A stretch of 64,000 nt of DNA, taken from positions 186,001 through 250,000 of the IMG/VR virus record IMGVR_UViG_3300035698_035366; one strand, 5' to 3'. A program made the translations under genes and the position numbers. Below are positions 4,473 through 35,750 of the stretch, piece by piece. Each line of letters starts with the position of its first letter. Position 1 is the stretch's first letter. Under the pieces are notes generated by a model. That model ran no database searches and had not been told where the DNA came from. It worked only from the letters and a program-made list of their open reading frames with translations.

Positions 4473-5132
4473 ATGAATACACCAGAAAAATATCCTAGGA
4501 CTTTACATTGGCCTGAAAGTGAAACTATTCACGCCGATGATAAGACCCACACCGATCCAGAATTTTTTATCGGCAAGCAAGTCGTAATAACAGAGAAACT
4601 AGACGGCGGGAATACCTGTCTCTATAATGGTAAGGCATATGCCCGATCAACCACAATGGAAGCTGGTGATGGGTGGTTTGCGATGGTCAAAAAGCATCAT
4701 GCATGGAAGACTACAAACATTGATCGCTATGCCTATTATGGTGAGGATTTATATGGCATTCATTCTATTGAGTATGATGCACTGGATGAGGGAGAAACGT
4801 TTCGTCTATTCGCTGTTCTCGACAATGAGACTAATATGTTTTTGCCTTGGGAAGAAGTCGTTCAACATGCGGTACAGAATGATTTCCTTACGGTTCCTGT
4901 AATTCACCCAGGTGGAGTATTTTTCAGTGTTCAGGAGATTACGGATTGGTTTAAGGTTGCAATGGAATATGGTTCAGAACTCGGAGATACTACTGAAGGT
5001 TTTGTTCTTCGACTAGCAGATGAAATACCATTTGATAAATTTGGTATTCAAGCATGTAAGTATGTCCGCAGAAATCATGTTCAAACTGATCAGCATTGGA
5101 GGAAAAACTGGAAGGCCTGTAAATTAACATGA
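4473..5132 (+). CDS. ATP-dependent RNA ligase family protein
   Basis: KYPRT.H.P, TEKLDGGN (motif I), YGE, EGFVLR, KYVR; TTGACA-N17-TATAAT promoter upstream. Confidence 0.85.
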   Translation: MNTPEKYPRTLHWPESETIHADDKTHTDPEFFIGKQVVITEKLDGGNTCLYNGKAYARSTTMEAGDGWFAMVKKHHAWKTTNIDRYAYYGEDLYGIHSIEYDALDEGETFRLFAVLDNETNMFLPWEEVVQHAVQNDFLTVPVIHPGGVFFSVQEITDWFKVAMEYGSELGDTTEGFVLRLADEIPFDKFGIQACKYVRRNHVQTDQHWRKNWKACKLT

Positions 5133-5461
5133 TGTTACCTGATACCCGAATTATGTGTAATAAGGCGGAATGTAGAACGTGCGGGGATATTATTGAGAGT
5201 CGTCACCGTCATGATTATGTTACATGTTCTTGTTCTTCAATTTCTATCGATGGTGGGAAAGATTATCTTAAACGTGTAGGAAATGTTATAGTTGATCTTA
5301 TTGATCTATCGGAACATGAAAGATATTTCCGAAAGCCTTATGAATGGTCAGCCCGCGACGAAGATGTCGAAAAATGGATGATTGAAAATGGATTTCCTTT
5401 AGATGGCAACTGGGATATCGAGCATTATACTCTTTATAAATTAACATGGGGAGACTGGTGA
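5129..5461 (+). CDS. Zn-ribbon protein (CxxC...CxC...DGG) with C-terminal YKLTW tail
   Basis: ORF track motifs. Confidence 0.65.
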   Translation: MMLPDTRIMCNKAECRTCGDIIESRHRHDYVTCSCSSISIDGGKDYLKRVGNVIVDLIDLSEHERYFRKPYEWSARDEDVEKWMIENGFPLDGNWDIEHYTLYKLTWGDW

Positions 5462-5464
5462 GAA

Positions 5465-5812
5465 ATGCTAGTCCCTGGCCGAAGGCTTACCCGTAATGCT
5501 GCTAGATGTAACAATTGCGGTAATCTTTTAGAAAGCACACCGACAGCCTTGAAGCAAAAATGTTCGTGTGGTGCCTTAACCGTATCTGGCGGATACGACC
5601 ATACACATCGACAATATAGTGGACCACTAGATTCAATGTTCCCCAAGTTTTATGAATTATCAGAATATAGTTGGAATTTTGATATTTGGGAAGTGGGAAC
5701 GGTTAGCCATCAATTTAAAGTGGCTGAGTGGATCAAGGAAAACGGTTTCCCTGAAGATGGAAATTGGAGTAAAGAACAAAAAGTTCTTTTTACATTATCC
5801 TATGGTATTTAA
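5465..5812 (+). CDS. Paralogous Zn-ribbon protein
   Basis: CNNC...CSCG...SGG; WIKENGFPEDGNW shared with the upstream ORF. Confidence 0.65.
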   Translation: MLVPGRRLTRNAARCNNCGNLLESTPTALKQKCSCGALTVSGGYDHTHRQYSGPLDSMFPKFYELSEYSWNFDIWEVGTVSHQFKVAEWIKENGFPEDGNWSKEQKVLFTLSYGI

Positions 5813-6029
5813 ACTAAACGGTAAATATTTTTCAGGTAGTAACGTGGTGTGGTTAAAAGACGGTGTTTTACACAAAACTACTGGACCGGCGGTCGAACGA
5901 GTGGATGGAAGTTCGTTGTGGTTTGTAAATGGGAACGAAATACCCAATGAATGGATTGCGGAAAATATCAAGAACACGAAGGATGTAAATAAGGAAGAAC
6001 AAGTATTATTGAAATTGACTTGGAGTTAA
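5802..6029 (+). CDS. Small protein with LH..GPAV repeat unit and LKLTW tail
   Basis: Probable start ATG 5802 inside ORF 5652..6029. Confidence 0.55.
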   Translation: MVFKLNGKYFSGSNVVWLKDGVLHKTTGPAVERVDGSSLWFVNGNEIPNEWIAENIKNTKDVNKEEQVLLKLTWS

Positions 6030-6033
6030 GCAT

Positions 6034-6972
6034 ATGTCAAGCATCGATGGCGGTAAGCCTCCTTACCAAGGTATTAGAACGTTTATGCGTTCAACTTATA
6101 CACAGGATTTAACGGATGTTGATATTGCTGTAATTGGCATTCCTTTAGATTTAGGGACGACTAATCGCCCAGGAACACGGATGGGACCAGCTGATATACG
6201 TGATGTTAGTTTGCGACGTTGTTCCGGTGACAATCCCCGTTATGGGTGTAATCCCGTTAATTATGCAAAGATTGTAGACTATGGTGATCTTAATTTGGTA
6301 CTTGGTGATATTACAAAAAGCGTTGATTTAATTTCTATCCAAATGGAACAAATCTTAAAATCTGGAGTTCATCCGGTTATACTTGGGGGTGACCACACTA
6401 TCACTTATCCAATCCTAAAAGCGTTTTATCAACAAAATCAACAGCCAATGGCCATCGTCCATTTTGATGCTCATCATGATTATTGGTCAGAAAACTATGG
6501 CGCACCAATTGCCCATGGAACATGGCTTTATCATGCAGTACAGGAAGGGTTGGTTGATGTAGAGAATTCTTTCATGCTTGGTATACGTTGCCCTTCGGAA
6601 CCAACCCACGTTGAAAATCTCCGAAACTTGGGGATGACAGTTTGGGATTACGATTTTGTCCATGAGAAAGGAATGGCCGAAATTGCTCGAAGAATAGATT
6701 TCAAATTAAATGACACACCAGTTTATCTTACCTTCGATGTTGATGGACTCGATCCAGCTTATGCTCCAGGAACCGGAACGCCTGAACCGGGAGGATTTAC
6801 TACTCAAGAAGCAATGCTCCTTTTACATGGTTTAAGAAATCTAAACTGGAAAGGTATGGACGTTGTTGAGGTTTCTCCGATGTATGATGTTGGTCAAATA
6901 ACTAGCCTAGCGGCATGTTCAATAGCATGGAACTATATTTCTGGTATAGCACCAAGTATTGGTACCAAATAA
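6034..6972 (+). CDS. speB: Agmatinase (ureohydrolase family)
   Basis: GGDHTIT, DAHHD, TFDVDGLDPAYAPGTGTPEPGG, DVVEVSP motifs. Confidence 0.9.
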   Translation: MSSIDGGKPPYQGIRTFMRSTYTQDLTDVDIAVIGIPLDLGTTNRPGTRMGPADIRDVSLRRCSGDNPRYGCNPVNYAKIVDYGDLNLVLGDITKSVDLISIQMEQILKSGVHPVILGGDHTITYPILKAFYQQNQQPMAIVHFDAHHDYWSENYGAPIAHGTWLYHAVQEGLVDVENSFMLGIRCPSEPTHVENLRNLGMTVWDYDFVHEKGMAEIARRIDFKLNDTPVYLTFDVDGLDPAYAPGTGTPEPGGFTTQEAMLLLHGLRNLNWKGMDVVEVSPMYDVGQITSLAACSIAWNYISGIAPSIGTK

Positions 6973-8769
6973 AATGCAGATCTTCGACGATTATTATGTT
7001 GTTAGGCTTGTTGAACGCACTGACCACCGAGATTATAATCAAGATGATTTTGATTACGTAACTGCGGCTCAGAAATGGTTGCTAGAAAAGAAAGAAGACC
7101 TGGATTCCGATGAAGATGAATGGGATTTTATATGGTATGGCGCAGAATTCCATTTTAGAAAAAAAGAAAACGCCATAGAATTCAAGTTGATTTTTGGTTA
7201 AAAGTGTGTATAATGGAAATTGAAAATATTGGTGTTTATAAAATAATATTACTTGCCCGCAGTGATGATTTACCGTTTGACCGAGCTAGGCGAATAAGAG
7301 AAGCTAGACAATGGTGTGAAGATCTTAGAACAGAGTTAAGGGATATAGGATGGATTTGCCACTTTTTTGGCTCTGAATTTAATTTCCAGCGGAAAGAAGA
7401 TGCAGTTGAATTTAAATTGATGTTTGGATGACTTTGAATATTAGCACATATATGCCACAACCAATGATGTTACCGTGGGTTGAGAACCTTAAACATACTG
7501 AGTATTACCGACCCTGTCCTAGGTATTTTTGGTGGAAAGTTTTGAAAGAGTTTCCATGCTGTTTAATAAAACCAATAATAACAATCCAGTATCCAAAAAT
7601 TGCAGCTTACATGATAATGCCAACTAAAATAATAGATCTACCATCAGAGATAGTATATTGGATATTTGAAAATGTTAATCATCCATATTATATGATTCTT
7701 GATGAAGAGGAAATATTTAGATTTTACTTTACCGACCAAGAAGAAGCACTTTGGTTTAAGCTTAAATTTGGATAATGGAAGATCACCGCAATGCGTATTA
7801 GAGACATTATAAAATTGAGAGTGGTATATTACGTTGGCCCATCAAAACCAACTCTTGTTGCAGACGGAACAGTTGTAGATATCGGAACATATTCTATTAT
7901 GAATATACGAAAGGGTGAGGCTGATTTATCTTCTGGTAGATTTAAGAATTTCCTACCACCGCCACATCATACATCTGATAATGAACTTTTAAAATATTCG
8001 GTATTATGTCCCCGTTTTCAATTTAGCCATATTCTTGAATGGGCACAGAATACGGACGGGAAATGGTTTTCAGATTTCTATAATATTGGCCCAAAAGAGC
8101 ATTCATTTGAAATGTTCTTTGAAATGCAATCAGACGTGTTACTTTTTAGACTGATGTTTCCAGAAGGAATTTATCTAGAATGATCGTAATAACCAAAATT
8201 TGTAAAGATATTATGGCGGGTGGTAACTATTCAAAGCCAGTGGCAGGTTTTTGGTTAATGGTAATATTATTATCCGTAGTCATTCATTCGATAACAACAG
8301 ATGAATCGGCTTATTTATTCCCGCTATTAGTATTCTCAGCAATTATTGTGTCATTCATGTTGGTATTCCAAATATCGCTCGATCGAATTATTCTTGGTCC
8401 AAGAATAATGGGAGATGATTTAAGTTTTACTCCTAGATTTTCCCCATTTTTCTATTACTTAATAGAGAAAGACAACTTAAACAATAAGATAAAAGAATGG
8501 GCCAACACCGGGTGTGAAGGAGATTGCATCGTTGGGCATACGTATATTTTATTCCAGAAAAAATCGGATATTATTATGTATAAATTGGCGTTCATAGAAT
8601 GAACAAATCAAATCAAATATATATGGTCAAACGAGAAAACGTTGATGAGTCTACTATCAACGAGTGGGCCAAAACTACGTGTGAGGAAAAATGGACCATT
8701 ACTGAGAACTATGTCTTGTTTCGAAGCTATTCCGATGTTACAATGTTTAAATTGGTATTCACGGAGTAA
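6959..8769 (+). CDS. Run of six small paralogous ORFs ending in a 'DAxxFKL'-type motif (6959, 7204, 7428, 7791, 8180, 8599)
   Basis: ORF track plus unlisted ORF 8599..8769 (..SDVTMFKLVFTE). Confidence 0.7.
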
Positions 8770-8772
8770 TTA

Positions 8773-9132
8773 ATGATATCGCTTTTTACACGTCATTTAA
8801 TGAATAATAATTTTACACTGGAACTTCGGAAATGTGCTGGGTATGGTCGCCCCTCGTATACAGAGGTTCTTAGAACACTAACTCGAGACGAACAAGAATT
8901 AAAGGGTGGTAGATAGTTAATAAATCTACCACCTTCCGATGCTAATAAAAAGAAATTGGGATTCAAGGTATGTGTTGACGGGAATTTTAAATTACCAGAC
9001 ATGCTTGAATGGATTTTTAACAATGTTGAGAATAAATGGACCATTGATTTCTTTGTGATAGACTCGGTTATATACGATGTGTTTTTTGAAGATGTGAACG
9101 ATGCTGTATTTTGTAGGATGGTGTTACCATGA
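8773..9132 (+). pseudogene. FKL-family ORF with one in-frame TAG (8914-8916)
   Basis: ...ELKGGR*LINLPPSD...FFEDVNDAVFCRMVLP; frame otherwise open and ATGA-coupled to the next gene. Confidence 0.6.
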
Positions 9133-9730
9133 GAGCATATAAGTATTTATGTAAATCATTGTTAGATCGATATATTATAATATTTTGGTCTTTATATTTT
9201 GTTGTATGCATGATTGCATTATCAGTATGTTTTGACAAAACAGGGTCAGATTTCTGGTCAGCGTTATTACCTGCAATATTATTGCCTACTGTTGGCATAA
9301 TAGTTCAATTGATGATGTTTTCTAACGGATTGAAGTTTTATATACAACGCCGCGATGATATTAATGGAAATCCGGGTATATTCAAAATATACAGCCTGGC
9401 TCTTTTATATTATATGATAGAAAGTGGTGAAATGAATGGAATAGATTTTTTAGATTGGTCTAAAGAATACTGTGAGGGAAAATATATTCTTGGACGGAAA
9501 CATGTATTCTTCCAGAAGGAAACAGATGCAACACTATTTAGGCTTACAGTTTTATGAAGGTTTATAGATATATTTTTAATTTAATAAACAAAGATACTGT
9601 GAAGTATTTTTGTATAACTATGAGTCTGATCATTATTATAGCTTCGTCGTTAGTAATTTCTTATTTTCAAAACATTGACAGAAATTCAGCCGTCATGTTT
9701 AAACTTTTCTGGGGAACAGAAGAAAGTTGA
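9129..9730 (+). CDS. Two membrane-associated FKL-family ORFs (9129..9557 and 9554..9730)
   Basis: Hydrophobic N-termini; tails DATLFRL and SAVMFKLFW. Confidence 0.6.
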
Positions 9731-9745
9731 CAACCCAATTAAATA

Positions 9746-18367: not shown

Positions 18368-19735
18368 TTATTTTGCATATTTCCTTAGGTTTTCTAATTC
18401 ATCTAAATATACCTGACGTATTTTGGTTTTTGATTTCAGTAATGATTTATAATACTTGATGTTTTTCTCTAATTCAGTAATTTTCTTCTTAACTTCTTCA
18501 AAGAATTCCTTATTCCAACGATAGGTTGGTAGACTAACGATTCTGTCGATTTGTTTTTCATCCAACGCGGTTCCCGATGTCAATTTGACAACTATTTTTT
18601 CTAAGGTTTCCTTGTTTGGTACACCTGCACCAAGCTTTTCCGTTAGTTTATTCACAAAACACTTTTTAACACCTTCCCAGAAGTTTAATTCGTATTCATC
18701 GTCGGCGAGCATTTTATTATATCGTGTTGTATAAAATCCCAATCTCCAGTCCACGAAATCTTTTACGATATCAGTTGTGCTTTCGTACTTCTTAATACTG
18801 GTACCATTCCAATCAATCACAACCATGTTTTCAGTTTTGCGCTGCTTGAGTTTTAGAAGGTCAACGAAGTGTGTTTCGGTTTTATCTTTGCAATATCCCC
18901 GAGCGAATTTAATTTCAACATTAATATGATCGGTTGAATGATCAGTATAACCTTTAATTTTATCCTCGTCTTCAAGATTATTTAATCTATCCTTAAACTT
19001 TTCCAAACTAACATCTGGTGGTAGTTCAATAACCGAAACAGTTGATAAATCATTTATTTTTACTCTACCAAATATCTCCCAAGAATACCCTTCAACATTT
19101 ACTACTGGGCAGTCTAAATACGAATATGTTGGTTTCATCTTCCGTATTTCTTTACCTTCGACCACTGCAATAGTAGCTTCTAGTACCTGCTTAAAGCTAC
19201 GTGGTAAAATTTCAGTAGCCCACCCAACAGCGATACCTGAAATACCATTTAATAACACAGTTGGAACTAATGGTAGAAAATGTTCTGGTTCCTTTACTGA
19301 ACCATCATAATTATCTTTTAATGGGACAATTGCCAAGTCAGGTAACATAACATCTTCAGAAAATTTATTGCGTTTGATATAAGTATATCTCGGCGCCGCA
19401 ATACCGTCCTTGGGCGCAATACGAGTTCCAAACGTTCCGATACCATTAAATAATGGGACATTGTTATTATATGGCGCAGCAAGCAAACTGATCGCCCCTG
19501 CTGCTGATTGGTCACCATGAACATACAGATTTGAGGAAATCATTTCACCAGCAAGGGAAATAGTTTTAATTTTATCTGCTCGATTGCGCATGAGCCATAA
19601 AGCTTTTCGTTGAGCGTCCTTTAGACCATCACATATTCTAGGAATAGCTCGGTTTTCACAAACATATATAGAGTATTCCCTACTTGTTTCTAAAATATAG
19701 TTTGACGCTTCTCTTTTTATTAATTTTTCAGTCAT
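18368..19735 (-). CDS. DNA topoisomerase II, GyrA/gp52-like subunit
   Basis: RAIP...DGLK..QRK, YVHGD, AAPRY catalytic Tyr. Confidence 0.92.
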   Translation of the reverse strand: MTEKLIKREASNYILETSREYSIYVCENRAIPRICDGLKDAQRKALWLMRNRADKIKTISLAGEMISSNLYVHGDQSAAGAISLLAAPYNNNVPLFNGIGTFGTRIAPKDGIAAPRYTYIKRNKFSEDVMLPDLAIVPLKDNYDGSVKEPEHFLPLVPTVLLNGISGIAVGWATEILPRSFKQVLEATIAVVEGKEIRKMKPTYSYLDCPVVNVEGYSWEIFGRVKINDLSTVSVIELPPDVSLEKFKDRLNNLEDEDKIKGYTDHSTDHINVEIKFARGYCKDKTETHFVDLLKLKQRKTENMVVIDWNGTSIKKYESTTDIVKDFVDWRLGFYTTRYNKMLADDEYELNFWEGVKKCFVNKLTEKLGAGVPNKETLEKIVVKLTSGTALDEKQIDRIVSLPTYRWNKEFFEEVKKKITELEKNIKYYKSLLKSKTKIRQVYLDELENLRKYAK

Positions 19736-20316
19736 TAATCGTACCTTAATTTTAACATTATTAGGTTATCGTTGTTTATCCCGTGACAAAAGATTCGAAT
19801 TTCTGGATTTTGTCCCCGACCGTAGCCGGGAGAACTTGCAATTTTATAATCTTTATCCCATCTCCCAAATAAATCATCGCACAATTCTAAAAAATCTTGA
19901 TTTAGTCTATATTCATATCTATCTTCATCGTCTCGTATGATACAATCTTTAGACCTTTCACCATTAATAATAATACACCATTCAAAATGGTTATAATAAT
20001 TCTCATCTTTGAGGCTATATTCTTTATTTTCCAATACTTCTGTTGTCACATTTTAATCCCAAACCATCTTAAATAATAATAAATCTTCTTTTTCTTTGAA
20101 CGCAATATGAGTTATGCAACCGGCATGATATATACAAATATAACCGTCATTAATAGTCTCGTCGAGCCATTTAAAGACATGAATATCCAAGCGATAAACA
20201 AGCACCCATTCAGGTTTAATTTGGATTTCGAATGGATAGTCTTCTTTCTCCGAAAAAAGTGTATGGTTCATTTTAAAGAGCAATCCATTTTTTTCTATCA
20301 TCGGATCGTTTACCAT
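19735..20316 (-). CDS. Two FKL-family small ORFs between the topo II subunits
   Basis: Tails LIMLKLRY and DLLLFKMVW. Confidence 0.55.
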
Positions 20317-22153
20317 TGAATACTAGATCCAAACTTTCTTGCAGCTTTCCATCGTCTACGAGTGGAACACTTACTGGGTGATCTAAACTTTGTGCCCAAT
20401 CTTCCTTAGTCAATGTTCCAAGTCCTTTGGCACGAGTAATTGACCATCCTTTATATTTTTCCGAATCAAAGCTGTTATAATCATGTGAATACCAATATTT
20501 TCTCTGTTTGCCCTTCTCTGCGATGATGAATGGCGTCATAAACACATGAACGAACGGGTCCTTTTCGGAATCAAATAATTCTGGCCAATACGTATGGAAG
20601 AAATTGACAAGTAAAGCCGTAATGTTCATCCCGTCAGCATCCATATCAGCAGCAATGAAAACCTTTCCGTAACGCATAAATGGTCTTGACGCGGGTTCAC
20701 CAATCATTAGACCCAAAGCGTTCATTATATCAACCAAAACTTTATTGTCTAGAATTTTCTTTGGGACTTCACCATTAATATTGAGTATCTTACCGCTTAG
20801 TCCCAATCCACCATGTCTCTGTGGATCACGTACAGAGCTCATACCGGAAATAGCCGAAAGCCCTTCAGCGAGGAACAAAATGCAATCTTCTCTATTTTTG
20901 CCTGTTGCGTCTAGTAGCCCTGCAACTTTTGCCCGTTTAGCACTTTTAGCAGCTTTTTTCGTCTCATCTATGGCACGCTTATTTGATCGAGCTTCAGCTC
21001 TTTCAAAAATCATTTCAACCCATTCTTTATTTCGACCAAGTATTCTCTTAATCATTTCTAGATCGGAAACTTGTTTTTGCACTTCCTTACCAACCCATTC
21101 ATTAATCAAACGGGTTTTGGATTGTGAATCGAAATCCGGTGCTTTCATATTGGTGACATTGTAAATCAATAAGCCGTCATTAACGTCGGATCGATTCGGT
21201 GTAACCTTACGTCTTTTGGAGGTACCCTCTAGTGCCTGCAATACTGTACTATAAAAACTTCTCTTGAATAAATCAATATGAACTCCCCCATTGAACGCGG
21301 GTATATTATTCACCAAAGTATGTATTGTTTCTCCCGAATCAGTAAAATTCGGAATAATATAAAACTTGCTTCGTAAATTTTCTTGTGTAACATCAATGAT
21401 AATGGGTTTGATTTTAGGAAACAATGTTTTTTCAATAAACGGTGACACTTTTAATCGTTGACCATTATAATAGATTTTAACTAGCGGATTACTAACTGCA
21501 ATTTCAAATACCCGACTTTTAATAAATTCTTCAGGAATGACTAATGAGTCAAAAACTTTGGCACTCGGTTTGAACGTGATCTTTGTTCCAGTTTTTCCAC
21601 CTGTTTGGTCGACTATTTTTGGTTTACTCTTGTTTAATGAATCACCATCGATAAATGGATTCTCTTTAAAAACCTGCGTGAACTTTTTCTTATCACGCCA
21701 TATCTCAAGGTTCATAAATTCGGAACAGAAATTACAAGCTGAAATGCCAATACCATTTGTTCCCGCAACTTCACCTCGTTCTTCAAAGTTTCTACCAGCT
21801 CTGGCATTAGTTAATACCATTGTAGCCAAATATTCTTTATGATCTTTGTCATAATCGATTGGAATGCCACGCCCGTTATCTTCAATTGATATAGTTAATG
21901 TTTTAGGATCAACAGTTACGTCGATACGATCACCCGAGTTGTGGCCCACTACTTCATCAATAGCATTATCAATTGCTTCTCGAAAAAAGGTGTAAAGAGC
22001 AGGAACCCAGGTTAACTCTTTGATTTGTGGCTCGCCCTTATTGGAATAAACAATTGTTTCTTGTGTATGTGGTGATCTAGAACCAAGGTACATCTCCGTT
22101 CTCTTACGCACATGACTGTAATCTGTTAATTTTTGGATACCGTGATCTGTCAT
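20273..22153 (-). CDS. DNA topoisomerase II, GyrB/gp39+60-like subunit
   Basis: EAIDNAID, DNGRGIP, GTNGIG, EGLSA, DMDADG, KGLGT. Confidence 0.92.
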   Translation of the reverse strand: MTDHGIQKLTDYSHVRKRTEMYLGSRSPHTQETIVYSNKGEPQIKELTWVPALYTFFREAIDNAIDEVVGHNSGDRIDVTVDPKTLTISIEDNGRGIPIDYDKDHKEYLATMVLTNARAGRNFEERGEVAGTNGIGISACNFCSEFMNLEIWRDKKKFTQVFKENPFIDGDSLNKSKPKIVDQTGGKTGTKITFKPSAKVFDSLVIPEEFIKSRVFEIAVSNPLVKIYYNGQRLKVSPFIEKTLFPKIKPIIIDVTQENLRSKFYIIPNFTDSGETIHTLVNNIPAFNGGVHIDLFKRSFYSTVLQALEGTSKRRKVTPNRSDVNDGLLIYNVTNMKAPDFDSQSKTRLINEWVGKEVQKQVSDLEMIKRILGRNKEWVEMIFERAEARSNKRAIDETKKAAKSAKRAKVAGLLDATGKNREDCILFLAEGLSAISGMSSVRDPQRHGGLGLSGKILNINGEVPKKILDNKVLVDIMNALGLMIGEPASRPFMRYGKVFIAADMDADGMNITALLVNFFHTYWPELFDSEKDPFVHVFMTPFIIAEKGKQRKYWYSHDYNSFDSEKYKGWSITRAKGLGTLTKEDWAQSLDHPVSVPLVDDGKLQESLDLVFNGKRSDDRKKWIAL

Positions 22154-23584: not shown

Positions 23585-23612
23585 ATACTATATAGTATTT
23601 TTGGAGCATAAA

Positions 23613-24014
23613 ATGAAGTATAAAGATTTAAATAAACCTAAAAAAGGATACGCGGGTTATTTGTTGCCTGACGTAGAGCGGGATCGCCTGTTCTCAGAAT
23701 TTCCACCAAAATATTCAAAAACAGTTGCACATCATGTAACTACTAAATTTGGTGCAACGGAGAATGAAACACCAGATGATGTTGAATCATATTCAGTTGT
23801 TGGATATGCAGACACTGGTGATGGTTTGGAAGCATTAGTAATTTCGATTGGTGGTACAGTAAATCGCCCAGATGGATCAATTTATCATATTACTTGGAGT
23901 ATTAATCCTGAGAAATATAAGCCAAAGGATTCAAATGATCTGGTTAAACGGGACTATGACGAAGTTGGCCCAATTAACATTGATATGGTACCAACTTTCT
24001 TTCCGTTTAATTGA
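23613..24014 (+). CDS. 2H phosphoesterase-like protein
   Basis: Two HxT motifs (HVT, HIT). Confidence 0.6.
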   Translation: MKYKDLNKPKKGYAGYLLPDVERDRLFSEFPPKYSKTVAHHVTTKFGATENETPDDVESYSVVGYADTGDGLEALVISIGGTVNRPDGSIYHITWSINPEKYKPKDSNDLVKRDYDEVGPINIDMVPTFFPFN

Positions 24015-24064
24015 TAAATAAATATACAATAATTTAAATTCCCGTATGTCGGAGGACATTTTTT

Positions 24065-24610
24065 ATGGCAATACATGATACGTTTATCCCAGTTTGGTAT
24101 CACATTACAGTAACAAATCTAACAGGTGCTGCACCTGCAGATGGTTTTATTGATCACCAAAATCCACAAGACTTTCCAGCTTTTCCATCTACTCTTGCGC
24201 TGTCCCGGGCTAAGGAACGCGCCCGTATGCGTTATGAGGGAATGCTACAGCAACTCGCATTAGTTCAGATGATGTCACGAACAATGAATATTGTTGCAAC
24301 GGCATCTACTGAAGATACGGAAGCAACTGATTTTCAGATTACTGTTCAGTATGATCGCCCAGAATATGTTGCAACCGAAGATGAAGATAACCCAGGAACA
24401 ATTCTTGAGGGGGTTGATGCTGTTACACGTTTCGTCGCAAGAGCATTGGTTGTTGATACAATTGTAAATCGAGAGATTTATGATCCAACAGTTTCTTCAG
24501 GAAACCCACGCGGCCCAGTCATTGAAGAAGTTACAGCTGGAAAAATAGCTGCTGATCTCGCTACTGCTGAAGCAGCAATAACAGTTATCGAATCAGACCT
24601 AACGACATAA
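24065..24610 (+). CDS. Hypothetical late protein
   Basis: GGAGG SD, TAAATA upstream. Confidence 0.65.
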   Translation: MAIHDTFIPVWYHITVTNLTGAAPADGFIDHQNPQDFPAFPSTLALSRAKERARMRYEGMLQQLALVQMMSRTMNIVATASTEDTEATDFQITVQYDRPEYVATEDEDNPGTILEGVDAVTRFVARALVVDTIVNREIYDPTVSSGNPRGPVIEEVTAGKIAADLATAEAAITVIESDLTT

Positions 24611-24620
24611 AAGAAATTGG

Positions 24621-26485: not shown

Positions 26486-27739
26486 ATGTCAGACTTAGGT
26501 GATAATGCGGCTTCCACGCCACCAGAATGTTCATTCTGTGATAAAAATTCTCTTGAAGTATCAAAAATGATTGCTGCCGCTCAAGAAGGTGTGTATATAT
26601 GCGACGAATGTATTGAATTGTGTATGGAAGTTCTAAAACAAGATAAATCAACTGATATTGAAATTGACGGAGAAATACCAACTCCAGAAGAACTAAAAGA
26701 ATTTCTAGATCAATATGTTATTGGTCAGGATTATGCTAAAAAAGTCATCTCTGTTGCGGTTTATGACCATTATCGCCGTCTTGATAATCCAATTATTGAC
26801 GATGTTGAAATTGAGAAATCAAACATACTGCTTTGTGGTCCAACTGGCTCAGGGAAGACCCATATAGTTAAGACAATTGCTCGTATGCTTGATGTACCAT
26901 ATTATATCGCTGATGCCACTTCATTAACTGAAGCGGGTTATGTTGGGGATGACGTTGAATCTATTCTTTACGGATTGATGCAAGCCGCCGATCAAGACAT
27001 TAACCGTGCCCAGCGCGGAATTGTATTCATCGATGAAATTGATAAAAAAGGAACTAAATCGGGCTCGGCAAATATTACACGTGATGTTTCGGGCGAAGGA
27101 GTACAGCAAGCACTTTTGAAGATGATTGAAGGGACTGTTGCTCGTGTTCCAACAACTGGTGGCAGGAAACATCCACAAGGTGAAGTAGTGGAAATTGATA
27201 CAGCTAACATTTTGTTCGTTGTTTCTGGAGCATTCATTGGTCTTGATAAACTTGTATCTAAACGCATGAATAAAGGATACACATCGCTAGGATTTGCAAA
27301 TAAGAAAGAGCGACCAGACGAAGGCAAATCAATGGGTGAGATTTTAGAAAACATTGAACCAGAAGATTTAATAGAATATGGCTTAATCCCAGAACTTATT
27401 GGTCGTTTGCCAATTGTTTGCGGGCTTGACGAACTGACAGAAGAGCAGCTAGTGCAGATTCTAATTGAACCAAAAAATGCTCTTGTTAAGCAGTTTAAAG
27501 CTATGTTTAGTTTGGAAAAAGTTGAGTTGAAATTTAATGATGATGCGTTGGTTGAAATCGCAAGAATTGCTAAGAACCGTAAGACTGGCGCCCGCGGTTT
27601 GCGAGCCGTGCTCCAAAGGGCATTATTAAGCACGCAATTTCAAATACCTACAGCGGCAAAAGCAAAACCACCACTAAAGAATGTTACAGTAACTTATGAA
27701 GCGGTTACTGGTGAAGAAGAACCCAAATTGGATTATTAA
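26486..27739 (+). CDS. clpX: ATP-dependent Clp protease ATPase ClpX
   Basis: C4 Zn finger, GPTGSGKT, TEAGYVG, IDEIDK, GRKHP, LGF loop, TGARGLR. Confidence 0.97.
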   Translation: MSDLGDNAASTPPECSFCDKNSLEVSKMIAAAQEGVYICDECIELCMEVLKQDKSTDIEIDGEIPTPEELKEFLDQYVIGQDYAKKVISVAVYDHYRRLDNPIIDDVEIEKSNILLCGPTGSGKTHIVKTIARMLDVPYYIADATSLTEAGYVGDDVESILYGLMQAADQDINRAQRGIVFIDEIDKKGTKSGSANITRDVSGEGVQQALLKMIEGTVARVPTTGGRKHPQGEVVEIDTANILFVVSGAFIGLDKLVSKRMNKGYTSLGFANKKERPDEGKSMGEILENIEPEDLIEYGLIPELIGRLPIVCGLDELTEEQLVQILIEPKNALVKQFKAMFSLEKVELKFNDDALVEIARIAKNRKTGARGLRAVLQRALLSTQFQIPTAAKAKPPLKNVTVTYEAVTGEEEPKLDY

Positions 27740-28354: not shown

Positions 28355-28603
28355 ATGAGACTTCTTGAAATAGATTACATATATCCGTATACATTCGAAA
28401 TGAAATTCACTATTCAGGCAAGTAAGTTGGATTTTGAAGATATAGATTTGGAAGATTTAGAAGAATGGTGTATGGACAATTTGGAAGGCAAGTACCATAT
28501 TCGTCATGTACTATTACCACATGGTGATTTATGTCGATTTATATGGGTAACACTTTCGTCGGAATCGGATAGTGTTTTGTTTAAAACTAGATGGCAGGTA
28601 TAA
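28355..28603 (+). CDS. FKL-family small protein
   Basis: EWC...DSVLFKTRW. Confidence 0.6.
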   Translation: MRLLEIDYIYPYTFEMKFTIQASKLDFEDIDLEDLEEWCMDNLEGKYHIRHVLLPHGDLCRFIWVTLSSESDSVLFKTRWQV

Positions 28604-28799: not shown

Positions 28800-29243
28800 A
28801 TGGACATCGAATACATCAAAGGCAATTTATTTGAGACTGAACATAAAGTTATTGTTCATGGCTGTAATGCAATGGGCCGTATGGGATCTGGTGTTGCTCG
28901 TATTGTCAACAATGACTTTAATGAAGCTTATCAAGCTTATCGATCGGAATTCGAAACAACTGGTCTAGAACTTGGCACAGTTGTTTGGGCTGAATCGAAT
29001 GGTTATATGTTTGCCAATGCCATTACTCAGGACCGTTTCGGGCATGATGGGAAAAATTATGTTAACTATGATGCTATTCGAGCATGTATGGAAGAAGTAC
29101 ATGGGTATTGTGTAGCGCATGGTTATAGCCATGCAGCAATGCCAATGATTGGTGCTGGATTGGGTGGCGGAGACTGGGAAATCATTTCCAATATCATTGA
29201 AGTAGCGTTTATTAATGTCCAGCCAGTTGTTTATGTAATCTAA
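28800..29243 (+). CDS. Macro-domain (ADP-ribose processing) protein
   Basis: GNLF, HGCN..G.MGSGVA, PMIGAGLGGGDW. Confidence 0.85.
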   Translation: MDIEYIKGNLFETEHKVIVHGCNAMGRMGSGVARIVNNDFNEAYQAYRSEFETTGLELGTVVWAESNGYMFANAITQDRFGHDGKNYVNYDAIRACMEEVHGYCVAHGYSHAAMPMIGAGLGGGDWEIISNIIEVAFINVQPVVYVI

Positions 29244-29586: not shown

Positions 29587-29613
29587 TTATAAACCATTAA
29601 AGGGAATAACAAA

Positions 29614-30245: not shown

Positions 30246-30257
30246 ATAGGTTTTGTT

Positions 30258-30855: not shown

Positions 30856-31308
30856 ATGAATATTCGAACAACAAACCTCCACGAAATCATGAACAGAGCA
30901 ACCCCACACCTAGTTGGTTTTGATAGTCTCATCCGTTTACTTGAAGATACTGGAACAGCTTTGAATGGTGGTGCGTATCCTCCATACAACATAGTACAAG
31001 ATTCCGAACATGCTTACCGTATTGAACTCGCGGTTGCTGGATTCAAGGAAGAGGAAATCAACATTACTGTTGAAAACCGCAAGCTTTTAATTGTTGGCCG
31101 CAAAGACGATTCCGAAGAGCGTAATTATCTACACCGCGGTATCTCCACTAGAGCATTTGAACGTTCCTTCGTTCTAGCGCAAGACGTAGAAATACGTGAT
31201 GCGAGTCTAGTTGACGGCATGCTTTTGATTGAGCTCGAACATATCGTACCCGAGGCATTACAGCCAAAGAAGATTGATATACGAGTTGCTTCTAAATCAA
31301 AGAAGTAA
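30856..31308 (+). CDS. Small heat-shock protein (IbpA/Hsp20)
   Basis: YPPYNI, IELAVAGF, YLHRGIS.RAF.RSF, DGML.I.L. Confidence 0.95.
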   Translation: MNIRTTNLHEIMNRATPHLVGFDSLIRLLEDTGTALNGGAYPPYNIVQDSEHAYRIELAVAGFKEEEINITVENRKLLIVGRKDDSEERNYLHRGISTRAFERSFVLAQDVEIRDASLVDGMLLIELEHIVPEALQPKKIDIRVASKSKK

Positions 31309-31332
31309 TTTAGATTAGATATTATATTTGGG

Positions 31333-31360
31333 ACGCGGGGAATCATTCCCCGCGTCTTTT
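31333..31360 (+). terminator. Intrinsic terminator
   Basis: GACGCGGGGAA-TCA-TTCCCCGCGTC followed by a T tract. Confidence 0.8.
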
Positions 31361-31452
31361 ATTGACTTTGAATAAAAATTCTATTAGTATAAAAAATATA
31401 TTAACTAAATAATGTGGTATTAAAATTATTCATATATAAAGGAAACAACGTA

Positions 31453-33398
31453 ATGGCACCATTTGAACATAAATATTTTCTATTATGGTTTCTTTTTGTT
31501 ACGTTTGTGTCATTTATGGCAATAACTGGGTTCTATCTAGGATTGCTTGGTCCAGTATTTGAAGGAGACCAAACATATATTTCACATAGCATAGGGATGA
31601 TATATATCATAACTGAGTTATATGTTGGATATAAAATATATCGTTTAAGCCAAGAGCTCAATCACGTAATCGAAACTGATAGAATATATGATGCAGCAAC
31701 CGTGATTGATATCAAAACTAAATCTAAAATATTAAATGATGTAATTGGTAATCTTGTTCGAAAGAAGAATGCTGATCCAAAACTGTTGTTAGAAAACACT
31801 GATGATCAAATTTCCGTTAATAACCAAGGACCATTCCTTTCAGAAATAATGATCCGTGCAGGCTTATTTGGTACAATCATCGGTCTTATTATTGCATTTT
31901 ATCCGTTCATCCAAGGACAGGTTGATGGATCAGGATCAGCGACATTAACAGCTGATCAAACTAAATTGATTATTGGTAGCTTGTTCCAGGGCGTAGCAAC
32001 CGCATTTTACACAACCGCGGTTGGCTTATTTTGTGGAACATTGATTACCATTTCCTCTAGATTCTACGAAATGTGCCAAAGCCAAATAATGAATAAAATG
32101 ACAGTATTGTTATTAGGACAAATTCACCAACCTCTTGAAATTATTAAACCGGCGGGTGGTAAATGAGAAGAACGCGATCTGAATTTCCACAACTACCAAC
32201 ATCTTTTTTAGATTTATTATTTGGGCTTATTATTGTTTTCGCAACCGTTTCGGTTTTAGCTTGGATATTAATCAATCCAATAGCCGAAAAGGGTAACATT
32301 ACTAAAAAAGCTGAATTCTTGCTTACGCTTTCATGGCCGGAAGGATCAATTGATATTGATACTTGGATATTGTTGCCAAATGGTCGTACTATCAGTTTCC
32401 GCTCCCCTGAACTTTCTCTTGTTAATATGGAACGAGATGATACTGGAAATTACAAGGATAGAATGGTAATTAACGATGAACTCGTCGCAGATAAAACTAA
32501 TATCGAATATACAACATTTAGAGCTATTGTACCAGGGGAATATATAATCAATGTTCATTTATATGGTGGTGGAGTATTCCATAGAGTCAACAGTATTGTC
32601 GACGCTATAGACCAAGAAAAAGAAAAATCCGATAAGTTTGATAACTTGCCATTAACAGGTAATTTTTTGGAACCATTACCGTTCCATGTAAAATTTGAAA
32701 AGTTGAATCCAAAAATAAAATTGATATTTGATACGGATGGTGAATTCAATCACTATAGAGAAGAAGTTCATGTTTTCAGGTTTACCCTCACACTTGACGG
32801 GGATATTACGGATTTACGTACCGATGAACCAGTAAAAATTGTTGATGATGTTATCAATGAACGAAATTAATAAGGAAACGAATAAATGGAAATTGGTTTA
32901 AACATTTTTACATTTTCATTAATGTATGTGTTTTTGATTATATTATTATTAGTTATGTGTATATATAGTCGAGCACCTTTTTGGATCAAAATAATACCAA
33001 TTTCATGTGCAATTTTCTTTTTGGTGGGTTCATATCTCACTATTAACGGTTTATTAGGTAGACCTACAACAAAACAATTACCAAACGAATTCAAGTTTAT
33101 TGAATATGTTGTTGAAGCACCAATTAAGGCTAAAAATGATCCAGGTAGAATTTTCGTATTTTTAAAAGATGGGAATGGTTATAGATTACACGAATTACCA
33201 TATTCTAGACCAATGCATAAAAAGTTAAAAGAACTAAAAAAGAAGAAAAAAGGTAGCCGTGGTCAACCTATTGATATTAAAAGAAAAGATAAACAAACAA
33301 AGAAATTATTGCCACATTTATTCAATACTGATGTATATGAACCAACCAAATGGCGAATTATGAATGATGTTGTAAATCCACCAGCAAAGGATGGTTGA
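31453..33398 (+). CDS. MotA/TolQ/ExbB-like gene (31453..32166), partner membrane protein (32163..32870) and third membrane protein (32886..33398)
   Basis: GLFGTIIGL...G.ATAFYTTAVGL; FLDLLF N-terminal TM. Confidence 0.7.
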
Positions 33399-33500
33399 AC
33401 TTAATAGTATAAGTTTGGGTGATAGAATTATTAATTGACATGTTATCTATTTTATGCTATAAATACACTGAATGCAAATGACATACCAGGAGTTGTTCTT

Positions 33501-33815
33501 ATGAGTGACGTAGAAGTAGTTGCCGATGTAGACATTATGACAAAGGTAAAGACTAAATCAAAACCGCCATCAATGTACAAGGTAATTTTCCATAATGACG
33601 ATTTTACCCCAATGGATTTTGTGATTAAAGTATTGATGACTATCTTTAGTAAGGATTTAGAAGAAGCTAATGCATTAATGCTCCGAATCCATGTGAAGGG
33701 AAAAGGCATCGCCGGCGTGTATAGTAAAGAAATTGCCGAAACAATGAAGAAAGAAACAATTGATGCCGCCCGCCTAAATGGCTATCCATTGAGAGTAACC
33801 ACTGAAGAAGATTAA
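33501..33815 (+). CDS. clpS: N-end-rule adaptor ClpS
   Basis: YKVIFHNDDFTPMDFV..VL...MLRIH..G.GIAGVY..EIAE...YPL. Confidence 0.95.
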   Translation: MSDVEVVADVDIMTKVKTKSKPPSMYKVIFHNDDFTPMDFVIKVLMTIFSKDLEEANALMLRIHVKGKGIAGVYSKEIAETMKKETIDAARLNGYPLRVTTEED

Positions 33816-33880
33816 GAACGAATTATATTGATTATATAGCGCCTCTTTTACTATAATTATAAGGTAAAGGAGGCGTAATC

Positions 33881-34153
33881 ATGACTACTGTAATACATAT
33901 TAATCGGAATGTCATTCAGCATAATAGCAAATACAATACAAATTTACCAATTTGTCGGGTGCAAATTGGAAATAAAGCCCGATATTGCCAGGAAGTTGAC
34001 ATACAAGGACCAAGCCGTATGGTATATCAACCCGATAAACCATTGAAATGTGGCGCTAAACTTTGGATAGAAACGAATTCACCGGTCGGGCTTATTGGTG
34101 AAATCTCATGGACCCGAATTAGTAAAGAAATGACAAAAAATAAATTGGGATAA
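33881..34153 (+). CDS. Conserved phage hypothetical protein
   Basis: IHINR...GPS...Y.PDKPL.CGA..WIET. Confidence 0.65.
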   Translation: MTTVIHINRNVIQHNSKYNTNLPICRVQIGNKARYCQEVDIQGPSRMVYQPDKPLKCGAKLWIETNSPVGLIGEISWTRISKEMTKNKLG

Positions 34154-34155
34154 TA

Positions 34156-35750
34156 ATGAAAATCTTTGAACATTCAAACACAGATAGAGAATATCCTCAT
34201 AATTTTGAATATGTTTTTACGATCTATGCAACCAATGACGAAGACCTGGAAAATGCCATAGAAACTATGCAGGACCCATTTGGCTATTGGTTGCAGGATA
34301 ACACTGAAGATAATTATATTTTCCTACGGCACGCTTCTAAAATTGTTGGGGGAGGATATGGTGGCAACTCAGAACAATCATATATTTTATGCAGAGATGA
34401 CCCATCTGATCTATCGCATGAAAATGTTTTTGATCATTTAGAAATAAGAATGTCAAAGCGAGATGCAGTAAAATTTAAATTGTGGTGGTGTTAATGGAAA
34501 TAATTGAATTACCAATCAACGACCGTACAGCGGGGATGTCATTTAATCAAGATGGAGAAGAGAAATACTTCTTTACAACTGATGTCGAAAAATATGATGA
34601 AATGATAGAATGGCTATTTGAATATACTGCGCACCGATTTACATTTTTAGGAACAAATAGAATTTATTTCGAAGACAAGAAGGATGCTGCAATTTTTAAG
34701 ATTGCTTGGCTATGACCATACTATTTGATGGATGTTATTTTATAGTGAATGCGGGGGTATCAGATTACCGATCTGATTGGTGTTCTGATAATATTGGAAT
34801 GTTCGATTGGAAAGTTGGGTCTAACCCAGTTGATGGTTGTTCATGTTATTTTTTTAAAAACGACGAAGATGCAATTTTATTTAAGTTATCATGTTTATAA
34901 TAATCCTTTTTGTTTTTGTTGTAGATTCATTAATCGGTAATTATATGATTGAGATTGGCTTACATTCTGAATCATTGGTTGTATCATTGATTATTGCAAC
35001 TATCCTAAGAGGTTGTTCCAATATATCAAATATATATGTAAACATGTTAAAGTTGTTTTTTAAGCACATAAATATTAAAGGTAACAGTAAAGAACACCAA
35101 AACTGGTGCCGAGATAATTTATCAATTTGTTGGTTTAAAATTGAAAACACATTTTATTTTTTAAGAAAACAGGACGCTGTACTATTCAAATTGGCACACA
35201 ATATTAATGAAGATTACACTTAAACAGTTATTGTCGCCTGATATATCAAGTGATTTCGTTGAAGCAATTGAAAGCGGTGAAGCATTTGATCTAGAAGGAA
35301 ATACGGCTTATATCATTAAGGGTGGATCAGAACTAAAAAATGAAATAGATGAGTGGTGTACTAATACATTAGAATATGAATGGGCTAGTATTGGCCCAGT
35401 ATCATATTCTATAACCGAAAAGAAAATATGCGGATGGACGTTTTTTAATGATAATGACGCACTTTTATTTAGATTGACGTGGGTATAATATGGCGATAGA
35501 TGAAAATTTGAAAGTAGATAATTGGTTTTCGTATTCCTTGTTCCTTGATTCATTTGTCCAAAAGGAATCAAATGGTATATATTTTCTTTCTCCTGAAATT
35601 ATGGAATGGTTATGTGAAACCGTTGAATATCCAATCGAAACTGAAGGCTTCGATGAAGAGGGGTTTTCTCTTGGGTTTGGATTGTATTTTGAAAAAAATG
35701 AAGATGCAACCCTATTTCGATTGACGTGGTGTAATGATAAAGATAAGTAA
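34156..35750 (+). CDS. Run of six FKL-family small ORFs
   Basis: Tails DAVKFKLW, DAAIFKIAW, DAILFKL, DAVLFKL, DALLFRLTW, DATLFRLTW. Confidence 0.7.

Follow-up and report, generated by a model that had tools for sequence, protein, structure and literature searches.

An expanded, uncatalogued family of small proteins in a salt-lake jumbo phage is built on a predicted C-terminal domain

Analysis of a 64,000-nucleotide stretch of the 296-kb genome of a salt-lake jumbo phage (positions 186,001 to 250,000 of record IMGVR_UViG_3300035698_035366; hereafter the window) revealed tandem arrays of small open reading frames (ORFs) whose products share a C-terminal segment of 45–50 residues. The first array lies downstream of an RNA ligase-like ORF; a syntenic gene matching the Pfam RNA_ligase family is present in L009, one of the sequences used for comparison. 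A six-gene array follows ClpS and abuts a homologue of the Thoeris inhibitor Tad6 (E 1.4e-21). Other members are dispersed, one of them neighbouring a macro-domain gene and one lying between the genes for the two topoisomerase II subunits. The features are listed in the table below.

Features of the window (E, value with the profile built only from Phosso and metagenomic sequences; self-trained, profile containing sequences of the window)
Position	Strand	Feature	Length (aa)	E	Further evidence
4436..4464	+	Perfect sigma-70-type promoter (TTGACA-17-TATAAT) upstream of the RNA ligase gene and the first array			
5129..5461	+	DUF7695 Zn-ribbon protein with a hairpin-less tail that has only the first and last helices of the module (motifs W..EN and LYKLTWG); not a profile member		0.028	PF24749 E 9e-24, 83.4 bits (Pfam gathering score 25); AlphaFold2 pLDDT 90.9, E62-68, H75-86, H97-107
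5465..5812	+	Second DUF7695 protein with the same kind of tail; not a profile member		5	PF24749 E 7.9e-13, 48.4 bits (Pfam gathering score 25)
5652..6029	+	ORF with MORN-like repeats and a tail resembling the last helix; unsupported		7.5	Self-trained E 0.005
6959..7201	+	Family member, first of a tandem run	80	8.5e-5	Best paralogue is its neighbour 7204
7204..7431	+	Family member	75	2.2e-9	Self-trained E 5.8e-12
7428..7775	+	Family member	115	1.7e-10	
7791..8183	+	Family member	130	1.2e-6	
8180..8602	+	Family member, two hydrophobic (transmembrane-like) N-terminal segments	140	6.7e-9	Best paralogue is 8599
8599..8769	+	Family member, essentially the domain alone	56	2.6e-10	AlphaFold2 pLDDT 91.2, E8-11, H17-27, E32-34, E38-41, H44-54
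8905..8933		10-bp hairpin			
8956..9132	+	Family member, in frame with upstream ORF 8773-8916, separated by a TAG at 8914-8916	58	1.8e-9	
9129..9557	+	Family member, two hydrophobic N-terminal segments	142	1.3e-10	Resembles 8180 over 117 aa
9554..9730	+	Reduced member, one hydrophobic segment plus only the last helix of the module	58	0.0034	
9727..9754	+	Perfect sigma-70-type promoter overlapping the end of ORF 9554			
10501..10809	+	Family member, the best-scoring one	102	7.6e-16	
10812..10840	+	Perfect sigma-70-type promoter directly after member 10501			
11756..12052	+	Family member, basic domain	98	2.9e-8	Domain pI 9.7
12582..12917	+	Possible divergent member; unsupported		0.7	E 0.026 in a separate search
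13835..14275	+	Family member, Cys/His/Trp-rich N-terminal part	146	1.8e-5	No Pfam match in the N-terminus
18368..19735		Topoisomerase II medium-subunit gene			
19735..20049	-	Doubtful, very divergent member, between the topoisomerase genes	104	no hit	Found only by models that contain it; leave-one-out E 100
20053..20316	-	Family member, between the topoisomerase genes	87	1.2e-9	Phosso has three members at the same position
20273..22153		Topoisomerase II large-subunit gene			
28355..28603	+	Family member, downstream of ClpX and IF3 and upstream of a macro-domain gene	82	1.8e-10	
34156..34494	+	Member with a long insertion in the hairpin, first of a six-gene array 340 bp downstream of ClpS	112	0.003	Matched as two pieces (self-trained)
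34482..34715	+	Family member	77	4.5e-13	
34706..34900	+	Family member	64	2.7e-10	
34891..35223	+	Family member, hydrophobic N-terminus	110	2.3e-11	
35207..35488	+	Family member	93	3.6e-11	
35490..35750	+	Family member, last of the array, overlapping the start of the Tad6-like gene	86	4.4e-10	

To establish whether the shared segment defines a family, as an earlier note had claimed for 25 ORFs of the window, we built an iterative hidden Markov model seeded with 20 window ORFs. At E ≤ 0.01, this found 49 ORFs genome-wide, none in reversed ORFs and 0–1 in five shuffled sets, and in leave-one-out tests 18 of the 20 seeds were recovered at E ≤ 1.2e-3. As an independent test, a model built only from sequences of Sinorhizobium phage Phosso and of metagenomes, with no sequence from this genome, was found to match 46 ORFs genome-wide at E ≤ 0.01 and none in the reversed or shuffled controls. 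About one gene in ten of the phage belongs to the family. The observation in the note is therefore real, and the family is larger than had been described.

The independent model supports 20 of the 25 ORFs; ORFs 5465, 5652, 12582 and 19735–20049 are not supported, and 5129 is borderline. ORFs 5652 and 12582 are those that the note had given as 5802 and 12600, and its ORF at 8773 ends at an in-frame stop codon, the domain lying instead in the ORF that begins at 8956. The literal pattern proposed in the note, [DE]A..F[KR]L.[WF], matches only nine ORFs genome-wide, against none in 50 shuffles, so that it is the profile, rather than the pattern, that carries the family. The N-terminal parts are mutually unrelated by BLAST, tandem arrays are confirmed, and one solid member (20053–20316) lies between the topoisomerase genes. 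Transmembrane N-termini are evident on inspection of the translations of 8180, 9129, 9554 and 34891. The zinc-ribbon N-termini are those of 5129 and 5465, the two DUF7695 proteins whose tails have only the two helices of the module and lack the hairpin.

The module is predicted to be a complete folded domain rather than a short tag. The AlphaFold2 model of the 56-residue product of ORF 8599, the only member that was folded, has the order strand-helix-strand-strand-helix and resembles an RRM/ferredoxin-like fold without the last strand. The only confident structural look-alikes are uncharacterised viral proteins, with TM scores of 0.75–0.81. The domain nearly always sits at the very C-terminus, and in about half of the members the chain ends one residue after the conserved W/F. 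Members of 56–65 residues in this genome are hardly more than the domain, and 48 of the best 149 metagenomic hits are of 80 residues or fewer. The strongly conserved columns are W (92%), F (95%), D (85%), A (85%), F (93%), K/R (90%), L (87%) and W/F (95%), the other columns being highly variable. Most of these are hydrophobic, and we read them as core or helix-cap positions from their place in the predicted elements, not from model coordinates. The domains are mostly acidic, with a median net charge of −2 and 65% of them negative, although 10–29% carry a net charge of +2 or more. No recognisable enzyme or effector domain was found in any long member, and a homodimer prediction gave no answer as to oligomeric state.

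The domain has no match in Pfam, PHROGs or NCBIfam, yet it matches 3,613 cluster representatives among 1.84 billion proteins and is common in uncultured phages. Phosso has about 49 copies, Atu_ph07 has six and PA5oct has five, whilst the metagenomic contig L043 has 27 in 15 kb and L044 has 13–14 in 12 kb. The best paralogue of a member is often the neighbouring gene. Comparison of this phage with Phosso reveals no orthologous members, identity reaching at most about 41% and in the domain only, even though the capsid proteins are 82% identical and the topoisomerases 59% identical. Rapid divergence of this kind also fits relaxed constraint.

The setting of the arrays is early-gene-like. The genome contains 30 perfect TTGACA-N16-18-TATAAT sites, against 0.45 in shuffled sequences, and these share an extended consensus. 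For 12 of 17 member clusters, the nearest such site, with a relaxed −10 element allowed, is within 1.8 kb upstream. Early expression is nevertheless inferred from these consensus sites only; no RNA run contains this phage, and the PA5oct paper gives no gene-level data for its members.

Taken together, the data support the view that the shared segment is the folded core, as predicted, of a large, phage-specific family of small proteins. In this view, the family grows by tandem duplication in the variable, early-transcribed parts of the genome and diverges so fast that two related phages, each keeping about 50 copies, share no orthologues. The members would be stoichiometric binders made early in infection, with a common hydrophobic core but each presenting a different surface composed of the open sheet face, a hairpin of variable length and a variable N-terminal extension that in some members is a membrane anchor. 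Each would therefore bind or block a different host protein, for example a defence component, making the family an anti-defence and host-takeover arsenal on one scaffold; the Tad6 homologue and the macro domain beside members are in keeping with this. What the analysis establishes is the family and its significance, the predicted fold, the copy numbers here and elsewhere, the lack of orthologues, the promoter-like sites and the neighbouring genes, whereas early expression, binding and the kind of targets are inferences, made without an experimental function or target for any member. The nearly fixed C-terminal end, the conserved K/R and the closeness to Clp genes could instead point to one common partner. 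We regard this reading as the best available but tentative, with a probability of roughly 0.42.

The note had inferred a common docking, targeting or degron module delivering diverse effectors, possibly to the phage Clp system, and this interpretation is only partly supported: the C-terminal module on unrelated N-terminal parts and the early-gene and anti-defence-like setting stand, but the Clp connection is weak. In its favour, all four phage Clp genes (two ClpP, ClpX and ClpS) lie 0–1,683 bp from a member (circular-shift P about 0.01–0.03), Phosso's second ClpP gene (115,158–115,679) lies inside a member cluster, and the ClpP gene of PA5oct is 546 bp from two members. All four isolates with members encode ClpX, ClpP and ClpS, and the ClpX of this phage keeps its N-terminal zinc finger, the usual adaptor site. 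However, the proximity test is post hoc, both gene sets being confined to the non-structural parts of the genome, and the four isolates belong to one clade, so that the co-occurrence is not independent. Members in Atu_ph07 are far from its Clp genes, and phage G and Acinetobacter phage MD-2021a have ClpX and ClpP but no members. Moreover, the module is predicted to be a complete folded domain, proteins that are little more than the domain have no effector to deliver, and the conserved positions are mainly hydrophobic, read as core or helix-cap positions. The ends, L-x-[WF] followed by one residue, lie within the last predicted helix and resemble neither the ssrA-type LAA end nor an unstructured C-terminal peptide of the other known classes. 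A docking or degron role, with binding to Clp proteins inferred, is thus unlikely on present evidence. A bolder form of the idea, also improbable but not excluded, is that the domain is a universal adaptor handle, each paralogue capturing a different host protein with its variable surface or N-terminal part and handing it to phage ClpX/ClpP, possibly with ClpS. This would be a phage-built, multiplexed targeted-degradation system analogous to viral F-box proteins in eukaryotes.

The other readings are also unlikely. Small nucleic-acid-binding regulators, using an RRM-like domain to bind RNA or single-stranded DNA and so tune early gene expression or block host RNases, are suggested by the structural comparisons given below, by an often aromatic residue at the exposed position before the invariant F of strand 3 and by the 10–29% of domains with a net charge of +2 or more; the acidic character of most domains and the absence of RNP1/RNP2-like motifs and of a fourth strand argue against this, and we consider it unlikely. 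It is very unlikely that the domain targets its carriers into the capsid or to a ClpP-like head protease, as the N-terminal targeting sequence does for T4 internal proteins. Two PA5oct members do lie next to a ClpP-family gene annotated as the head maturation protease and detected in virions, but gp209, gp210 and gp201 carry no mass-spectrometry note where neighbouring genes do, some members have membrane anchors, and for most arrays the nearest upstream promoter-like site is sigma-70-type rather than TATAAATA. Equally doubtful is the absence of any specific function, the family being a selfishly amplifying cassette, or partly spurious ORFs, kept by recombination between promoter-flanked modules. 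Extreme copy number, fast turnover, the copy split by a stop codon and the truncated copies would fit, but the same core pattern is kept across the cluster representatives and several phage lineages, the fold prediction is confident and the ORFs are tightly packed on the transcribed strand, all of which indicates purifying selection on the fold.

Amongst proteins of known structure, the best profile match in the PDB is the RRM-like domain of UPF3b (1uw4, 7nwu), with an E value of 0.0095, at the edge of significance, and an alignment running from helix 1 to helix 2. The order of elements is the same, as is the signature on strand 3 and helix 2, a hydrophobic residue, x, F, four residues and then D-A-x-x-F. 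The UPF3b domain is itself a protein binder. RRM and KH domains are among the top structural rows with Z values of 5.5–6.3 (Pes4 RRM4: Z 5.6, rmsd 1.6 Å over 50 residues), although values of 5–6 are within the range that the search program itself describes as common noise. The family is distinguished from RRMs by its three-stranded model, the protein ending after helix 2, by the lack of RNP-like conservation and by the absence of any Pfam RRM or KH hit, no RRM family being found at E ≤ 1 for 10 members or at E ≤ 0.1 for 40 relatives. In a KH domain, two helices flanking a GXXG loop follow strand 1; here only one helix lies between strands 1 and 2, there is no GXXG column, and KH rows reach Z values of 5–6 only. 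DUF7695 (PF24749) is a phage zinc-ribbon domain whose proteins are mostly of 60–78 residues and have no tail; only a small subgroup, 5129, 5465, P0156 and L010:8556-8876, carries the two-helix tail that echoes the module.

The logic of a constant C-terminal part combined with variable N-terminal parts, as the note proposed, is that of the poxvirus ankyrin PRANC/F-box-like domain and of the SspB tail that docks on ClpX. No sequence or fold relationship exists to these, a single Pfam F-box-like_2 hit (E 0.053) being taken as chance, and many members have no separate N-terminal part. The arrays recall the hyperplastic regions of T4-type phages, with their promoter-flanked, shuffling small ORFs or PeSL cassettes (PMC2839356, PMC4122927), in that small, putatively early ORFs sit between conserved core genes, near-consensus promoters lie at gene borders and turnover between related phages is very fast. 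Here, by contrast, one single domain family fills the arrays, up to 27 of about 42 genes in L043. As to the early promoter joined to a stem-loop that marks PeSL cassettes, the observations, which were not systematic, are of consensus promoters at gene borders, one 10-bp hairpin and no enrichment of terminator-like sites. Amplification of a small domain to dozens of copies in one jumbo phage has a precedent in the zinc ribbon of Bacillus phage G, with about 35 copies (PMC7824862), but the fold is different, the present family, which that survey does not mention, spans several phage lineages and thousands of metagenomic clusters. Finally, diversified immunity proteins of conflict systems, such as the SUKH superfamily, which is also found in viruses (PMC3113570), have an unrelated fold, and neither linked toxin genes nor a sequence relationship was found here; they are nevertheless likewise small, mostly acidic, highly diversified and arranged in tandem arrays, and suggest one scaffold set against many targets.

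The window is bases 186001-250000 of a single 296,119-bp virus record, which comes from salt-lake metagenomes and is labelled by IMG/VR as a provirus with an estimated completeness of about 79%. Its gene content, however, is that of a virulent T4-related jumbo phage, and one of its proteins occurs in identical form on a 407,795-bp contig, so that the record is probably a fragment of a genome of about 400 kb. The capsid protein is 82% identical to that of Sinorhizobium phage Phosso, 68% identical to that of Agrobacterium phage Atu_ph07 and 66% identical to that of Pseudomonas phage PA5oct, and the gene order IF3-ClpX-topoisomerase II is shared with Phosso and Atu_ph07. We therefore place the phage in the Atu_ph07/Phosso lineage of T4-related jumbo phages. 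About 2 kb downstream of the intact capsid gene, four short ORFs of 68-86 aa each match different parts of the Gp23 capsid family, which looks like a fragmented second capsid-like (gp24-type) gene or a decayed duplicate. Reads from four salt-lake sequencing runs revealed only the same phage, letter for letter and at low depth, and bear on neither diversity nor expression.

The C-terminal similarity of the small proteins is obvious in the ORF translations, made with genetic code table 11. A hidden Markov model seeded from 20 window ORFs and iterated over all 2084 six-frame ORFs of at least 35 aa converged on 49 ORFs at E<=0.01, with none found among reversed ORFs and 0-1 in shuffled sets; leave-one-out models recovered 18 of the 20 seeds. 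To remove circularity, we built a second model from Phosso and metagenomic sequences only, and this model finds 46 ORFs in the genome and none in the controls. The earlier note had listed 25 window ORFs sharing a C-terminal module, and 20 of these are supported by the independent model; we conclude that the observation is correct. Of the exceptions, ORF 19735-20049 is found only by models that include it, ORFs 5465, 5652 (placed at 5802 in the note) and 12582 (placed at 12600) are not supported, and ORF 5129 is borderline, with E 0.028. The ORF that the note placed at 8773 ends at an in-frame TAG, and the module lies in the next ORF. This stop codon is enclosed by a perfect 10-bp inverted repeat (GGTGGTAGAT ... 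ATCTACCACC), which could represent a broken gene, a regulatory hairpin or a cassette border. The literal pattern written in the note matches only 9 ORFs, against 0 in shuffled sequences, and a profile describes the family better than the pattern does.

To explore the structure of the module, AlphaFold2 was run on the 56-aa member with the 44 paralogous domains as its alignment. The resulting model has a pLDDT of 91.2 and the element order strand-helix-strand-strand-helix. The module is therefore predicted to be an autonomous domain of about 45-50 residues, which begins with a strand upstream of the tryptophan that opens the note's pattern. In an alignment of 273 domains from this phage, Phosso and metagenomes, the strongly conserved columns are a Trp in helix 1 (92%), half-conserved C/L, N, C and G in the turn that follows it, an aromatic residue in strand 2, a Phe in strand 3 (95%), D-A at the start of helix 2 (85% each) and, within helix 2, F (93%), K/R (90%), L (87%) and W/F (95%). 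Most of these are hydrophobic, and we read them as core positions from their place in the predicted elements rather than from model coordinates. A metal site at the two half-conserved cysteines (W-C-x-x-N-C) was considered and rejected, because L/I/V replace them freely. The rest of the domain is very variable, and the hairpin varies in length. About half of all members end exactly one residue after the last aromatic. The domains are mostly acidic, with a median net charge of -2, but 10-29% are basic. In this genome the median protein is 102 aa with a 38-residue N-terminal extension, and several proteins of 56-65 aa are the domain alone. A homodimer prediction for the 56-aa member scored 0.01, which is evidence neither for nor against binding.

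The N-terminal parts are unrelated to each other by BLAST, and no Pfam domain was found in any of the long ones. By inspection of the translations, four or five window members carry hydrophobic, transmembrane-like segments. ORFs 5129 and 5465 are DUF7695 zinc-ribbon proteins. Most DUF7695 proteins are 60-78 aa with no tail, but a small subgroup, including one in the contig L010, has a tail with the motifs W..EN and LYKL.WG. The AlphaFold2 model of 5129 (pLDDT 90.9) shows strand-helix-loop-helix in this region, with no hairpin. This tail may be a reduced derivative of the module, although the profile does not show it.

Scans of members and of 40 metagenomic relatives against Pfam, PHROGs and NCBIfam gave only scattered chance hits, and the family has no entry in these libraries. 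A word-based protein search with member 10501 found only itself, and tblastn with a consensus-like member against 50,697 phage records gave nothing at E<=0.01. A full HMMER search of 1.84 billion cluster representatives gave 3613 proteins at E<=0.001. Nearly all of the best hits are 49-280 aa with the domain at the end; some have two tandem domains, and one 890-aa hit is a repeat artefact. Their consensus, I..WC..NC.G.W ... F.FE...DA.LFKL.WG, is sharper than in this phage. By profile, Phosso has 40-49 members, Atu_ph07 has 6 and PA5oct has 5, and of the uncultured phage contigs, L043 has 27 in 15 kb, L044 has 13-14 in 12 kb and L010 has about 10 in 4.5 kb. The PA5oct members are gp209, gp210, gp201 and the ORFs at 165402-165563 and 242344-242451 of NC_071039. 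No members were found in T4, KVP40, CBB, P-SSM2, Vibrio phage 2.275.O, XbC2, Acinetobacter phage MD-2021a, phage G, Caulobacter phages CcrSC and CcrBL9, Rhizobium phage TM30 or Vibrio phage phiKT1024, and GAP32 gave one weak hit.

Structure searches, including one of the ESM Atlas, returned only unnamed viral clusters, with TM scores of 0.75-0.81. Against solved structures nothing is clear. Foldseek against the PDB found nothing significant, a wide VIA-align search gave only middling Z values of 5-6.3 for secretin N-domains, KH and RRM domains, and the best PDB match of the profile is the RRM-like domain of UPF3b, with E 0.0095. We therefore describe the predicted fold as RRM/ferredoxin-like without the last strand, and we do not class it as an RRM.

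The 49 copies in this genome form 17 clusters, the largest having 12, 8 and 6 genes. Neighbouring genes are often each other's best paralogue, as expected from tandem duplication. This phage and Phosso each carry about 50 copies, yet no pair exceeds about 41% identity, and that only within the domain; there are 7 weak reciprocal best hits. For comparison, the topoisomerase is 59% and ClpX 57% identical between the two phages. Both phages have members among small genes inserted between the two topoisomerase II subunit genes, three of those in Phosso being profile members, whereas Atu_ph07 has none, and the inserts in the two phages are not each other's best matches. The copy number is maintained while the individual genes turn over.

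The genome contains 30 perfect TTGACA-N16-18-TATAAT sites, against 0.45 in shuffled sequences, and 28 of these are on the + strand. They share an extended consensus, with 'aaagg' before the -35 element and 'tgtg' before the -10 element, and form a very uniform set of putative early promoters. Three lie in or at the first array. For 12 of the 17 clusters the nearest such site, with a relaxed -10 element, is within 1.8 kb upstream. This points to early transcription by the host polymerase, but that is an inference; the PA5oct transcriptome paper has no gene-level data for the members. The genes neighbouring the members include an RNA ligase-like ORF, whose syntenic gene in the contig L009 is Pfam RNA_ligase, an arginase/agmatinase-family enzyme embedded in the first array, which is an unusual auxiliary metabolic gene for a phage, a macro-domain protein just downstream of member 28355, which may process ADP-ribose signals or modifications, and a homologue of the Type I Thoeris inhibitor Tad6 directly after the six-gene array. 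MORN-like repeats (G.LHR.DGPA..Y.DG...W..NG) occur in a 125-aa ORF in the first array and in a 417-aa ORF elsewhere in the genome.

Features of the window, of the rest of the phage genome and of Phosso, with their coordinates
Sequence	Position	Strand	Feature
Window	4436		Perfect TTGACA-N16-18-TATAAT site
Window	4473-5132		RNA ligase-like ORF
Window	5.6-12 kb		Cluster of 12 members
Window	5652-6029	+	125-aa ORF with MORN-like repeats
Window	6034-6972	+	Arginase/agmatinase-family enzyme (PF00491, E 2.6e-87)
Window	8599-8769		56-aa member used for structure prediction
Window	8773-8916		ORF ending at the in-frame TAG
Window	8905-8933		Perfect 10-bp inverted repeat
Window	8914-8916		In-frame TAG
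Window	8956-9132		Member following the TAG
Window	9727		Perfect TTGACA-N16-18-TATAAT site
Window	10812		Perfect TTGACA-N16-18-TATAAT site
Window	19735-20316		Small genes between the topoisomerase II subunit genes
Window	26486-27739		ClpX
Window	28800-29243	+	Macro-domain protein (PF01661, E 2.6e-8; weak ThsA_Macro hit)
Window	31414-32870, 30856-31308	+	MotA/ExbB-like membrane protein (weak, E 8.6e-5) with an adjacent 235-aa membrane protein, and Hsp20-type small heat-shock-like ORF (named by inspection only), between the ClpX and ClpS regions
Window	33435-33815		ClpS
Window	34.1-35.8 kb		Cluster of 6 members
Window	35734-36465	+	243-aa Tad6 homologue (E 1.4e-21, 77.5 bits against a cut-off of 27); start overlaps the end of the last member of the six-gene array
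Window	37433-37948		Second ClpP (E 7.8e-35)
Genome	9650-10057		Member flanking the first ClpP
Genome	10193-10732		First ClpP (E 3.5e-85)
Genome	10668-11036		Member flanking the first ClpP
Genome	23363-24616	-	417-aa ORF with MORN-like repeats
Genome	78.6-79.6 kb		Intact capsid gene
Genome	81447-82324	+	Four short ORFs matching the Gp23 capsid family
Genome	148-151 kb		Cluster of 8 members
Phosso	376800-378300		Small genes between the topoisomerase II subunit genes

Our preferred explanation, which remains tentative, is that the family is a phage-specific set of small binders on one minimal scaffold, amplified in early, variable regions and diversifying under conflict with the host. In this view the most likely roles are anti-defence and host takeover; each paralogue would have its own target, and some would be tethered to the membrane. 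The analysis establishes the family, its predicted fold, its expansion and its turnover, whereas the time of expression, the binding and the targets are inferred.

The earlier note had proposed instead that the module is a common docking, targeting or degron element that delivers diverse effectors to one partner, possibly the phage Clp system, and this interpretation is only partly supported. The phage encodes ClpX, ClpS and two ClpP proteins, and members lie 0, 616, 341 and 1683 bp from ClpP1, ClpX, ClpS and ClpP2, respectively. Circular shifts of the member positions give P about 0.01-0.03, but the test is post hoc and three of the four Clp genes are in one region. The second ClpP of Phosso lies inside a member cluster and the ClpP of PA5oct is 546 bp from two members; Atu_ph07, however, shows no such closeness, the isolates belong to one clade, and phage G and an Acinetobacter phage have ClpX and ClpP without the family. 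Moreover, the conserved residues look like a core rather than an interface, and many members have nothing to deliver. We retain the docking/degron idea as a live minority hypothesis, though an unlikely one.

One uncatalogued domain accounts for roughly a tenth of the genes of this phage, that is, 46-49 members out of an estimated 470 genes, judged from the gene density of PA5oct and Phosso, and it recurs in dozens of copies in related jumbo phages and in long tandem arrays in uncultured phages. Defining it would remove a sizeable block of viral 'dark matter' and would give a compact natural scaffold of about 50 residues that phages diversify at high speed. If the members are inhibitors of host defence or physiology, the family is a large reservoir of new anti-defence proteins. 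As PA5oct, Atu_ph07 and Phosso are culturable, the question is directly testable.

In term searches of the Atu_ph07, AP-J-162 and PA5oct papers and of the jumbo-phage survey, we found no mention of a paralogous family. Multigene families of small early proteins and hyperplastic regions are known in large phages (PMC2839356, PMC4122927, PMC7824862); the present family is built on a domain that is absent from the libraries searched, and its scale is unusual.
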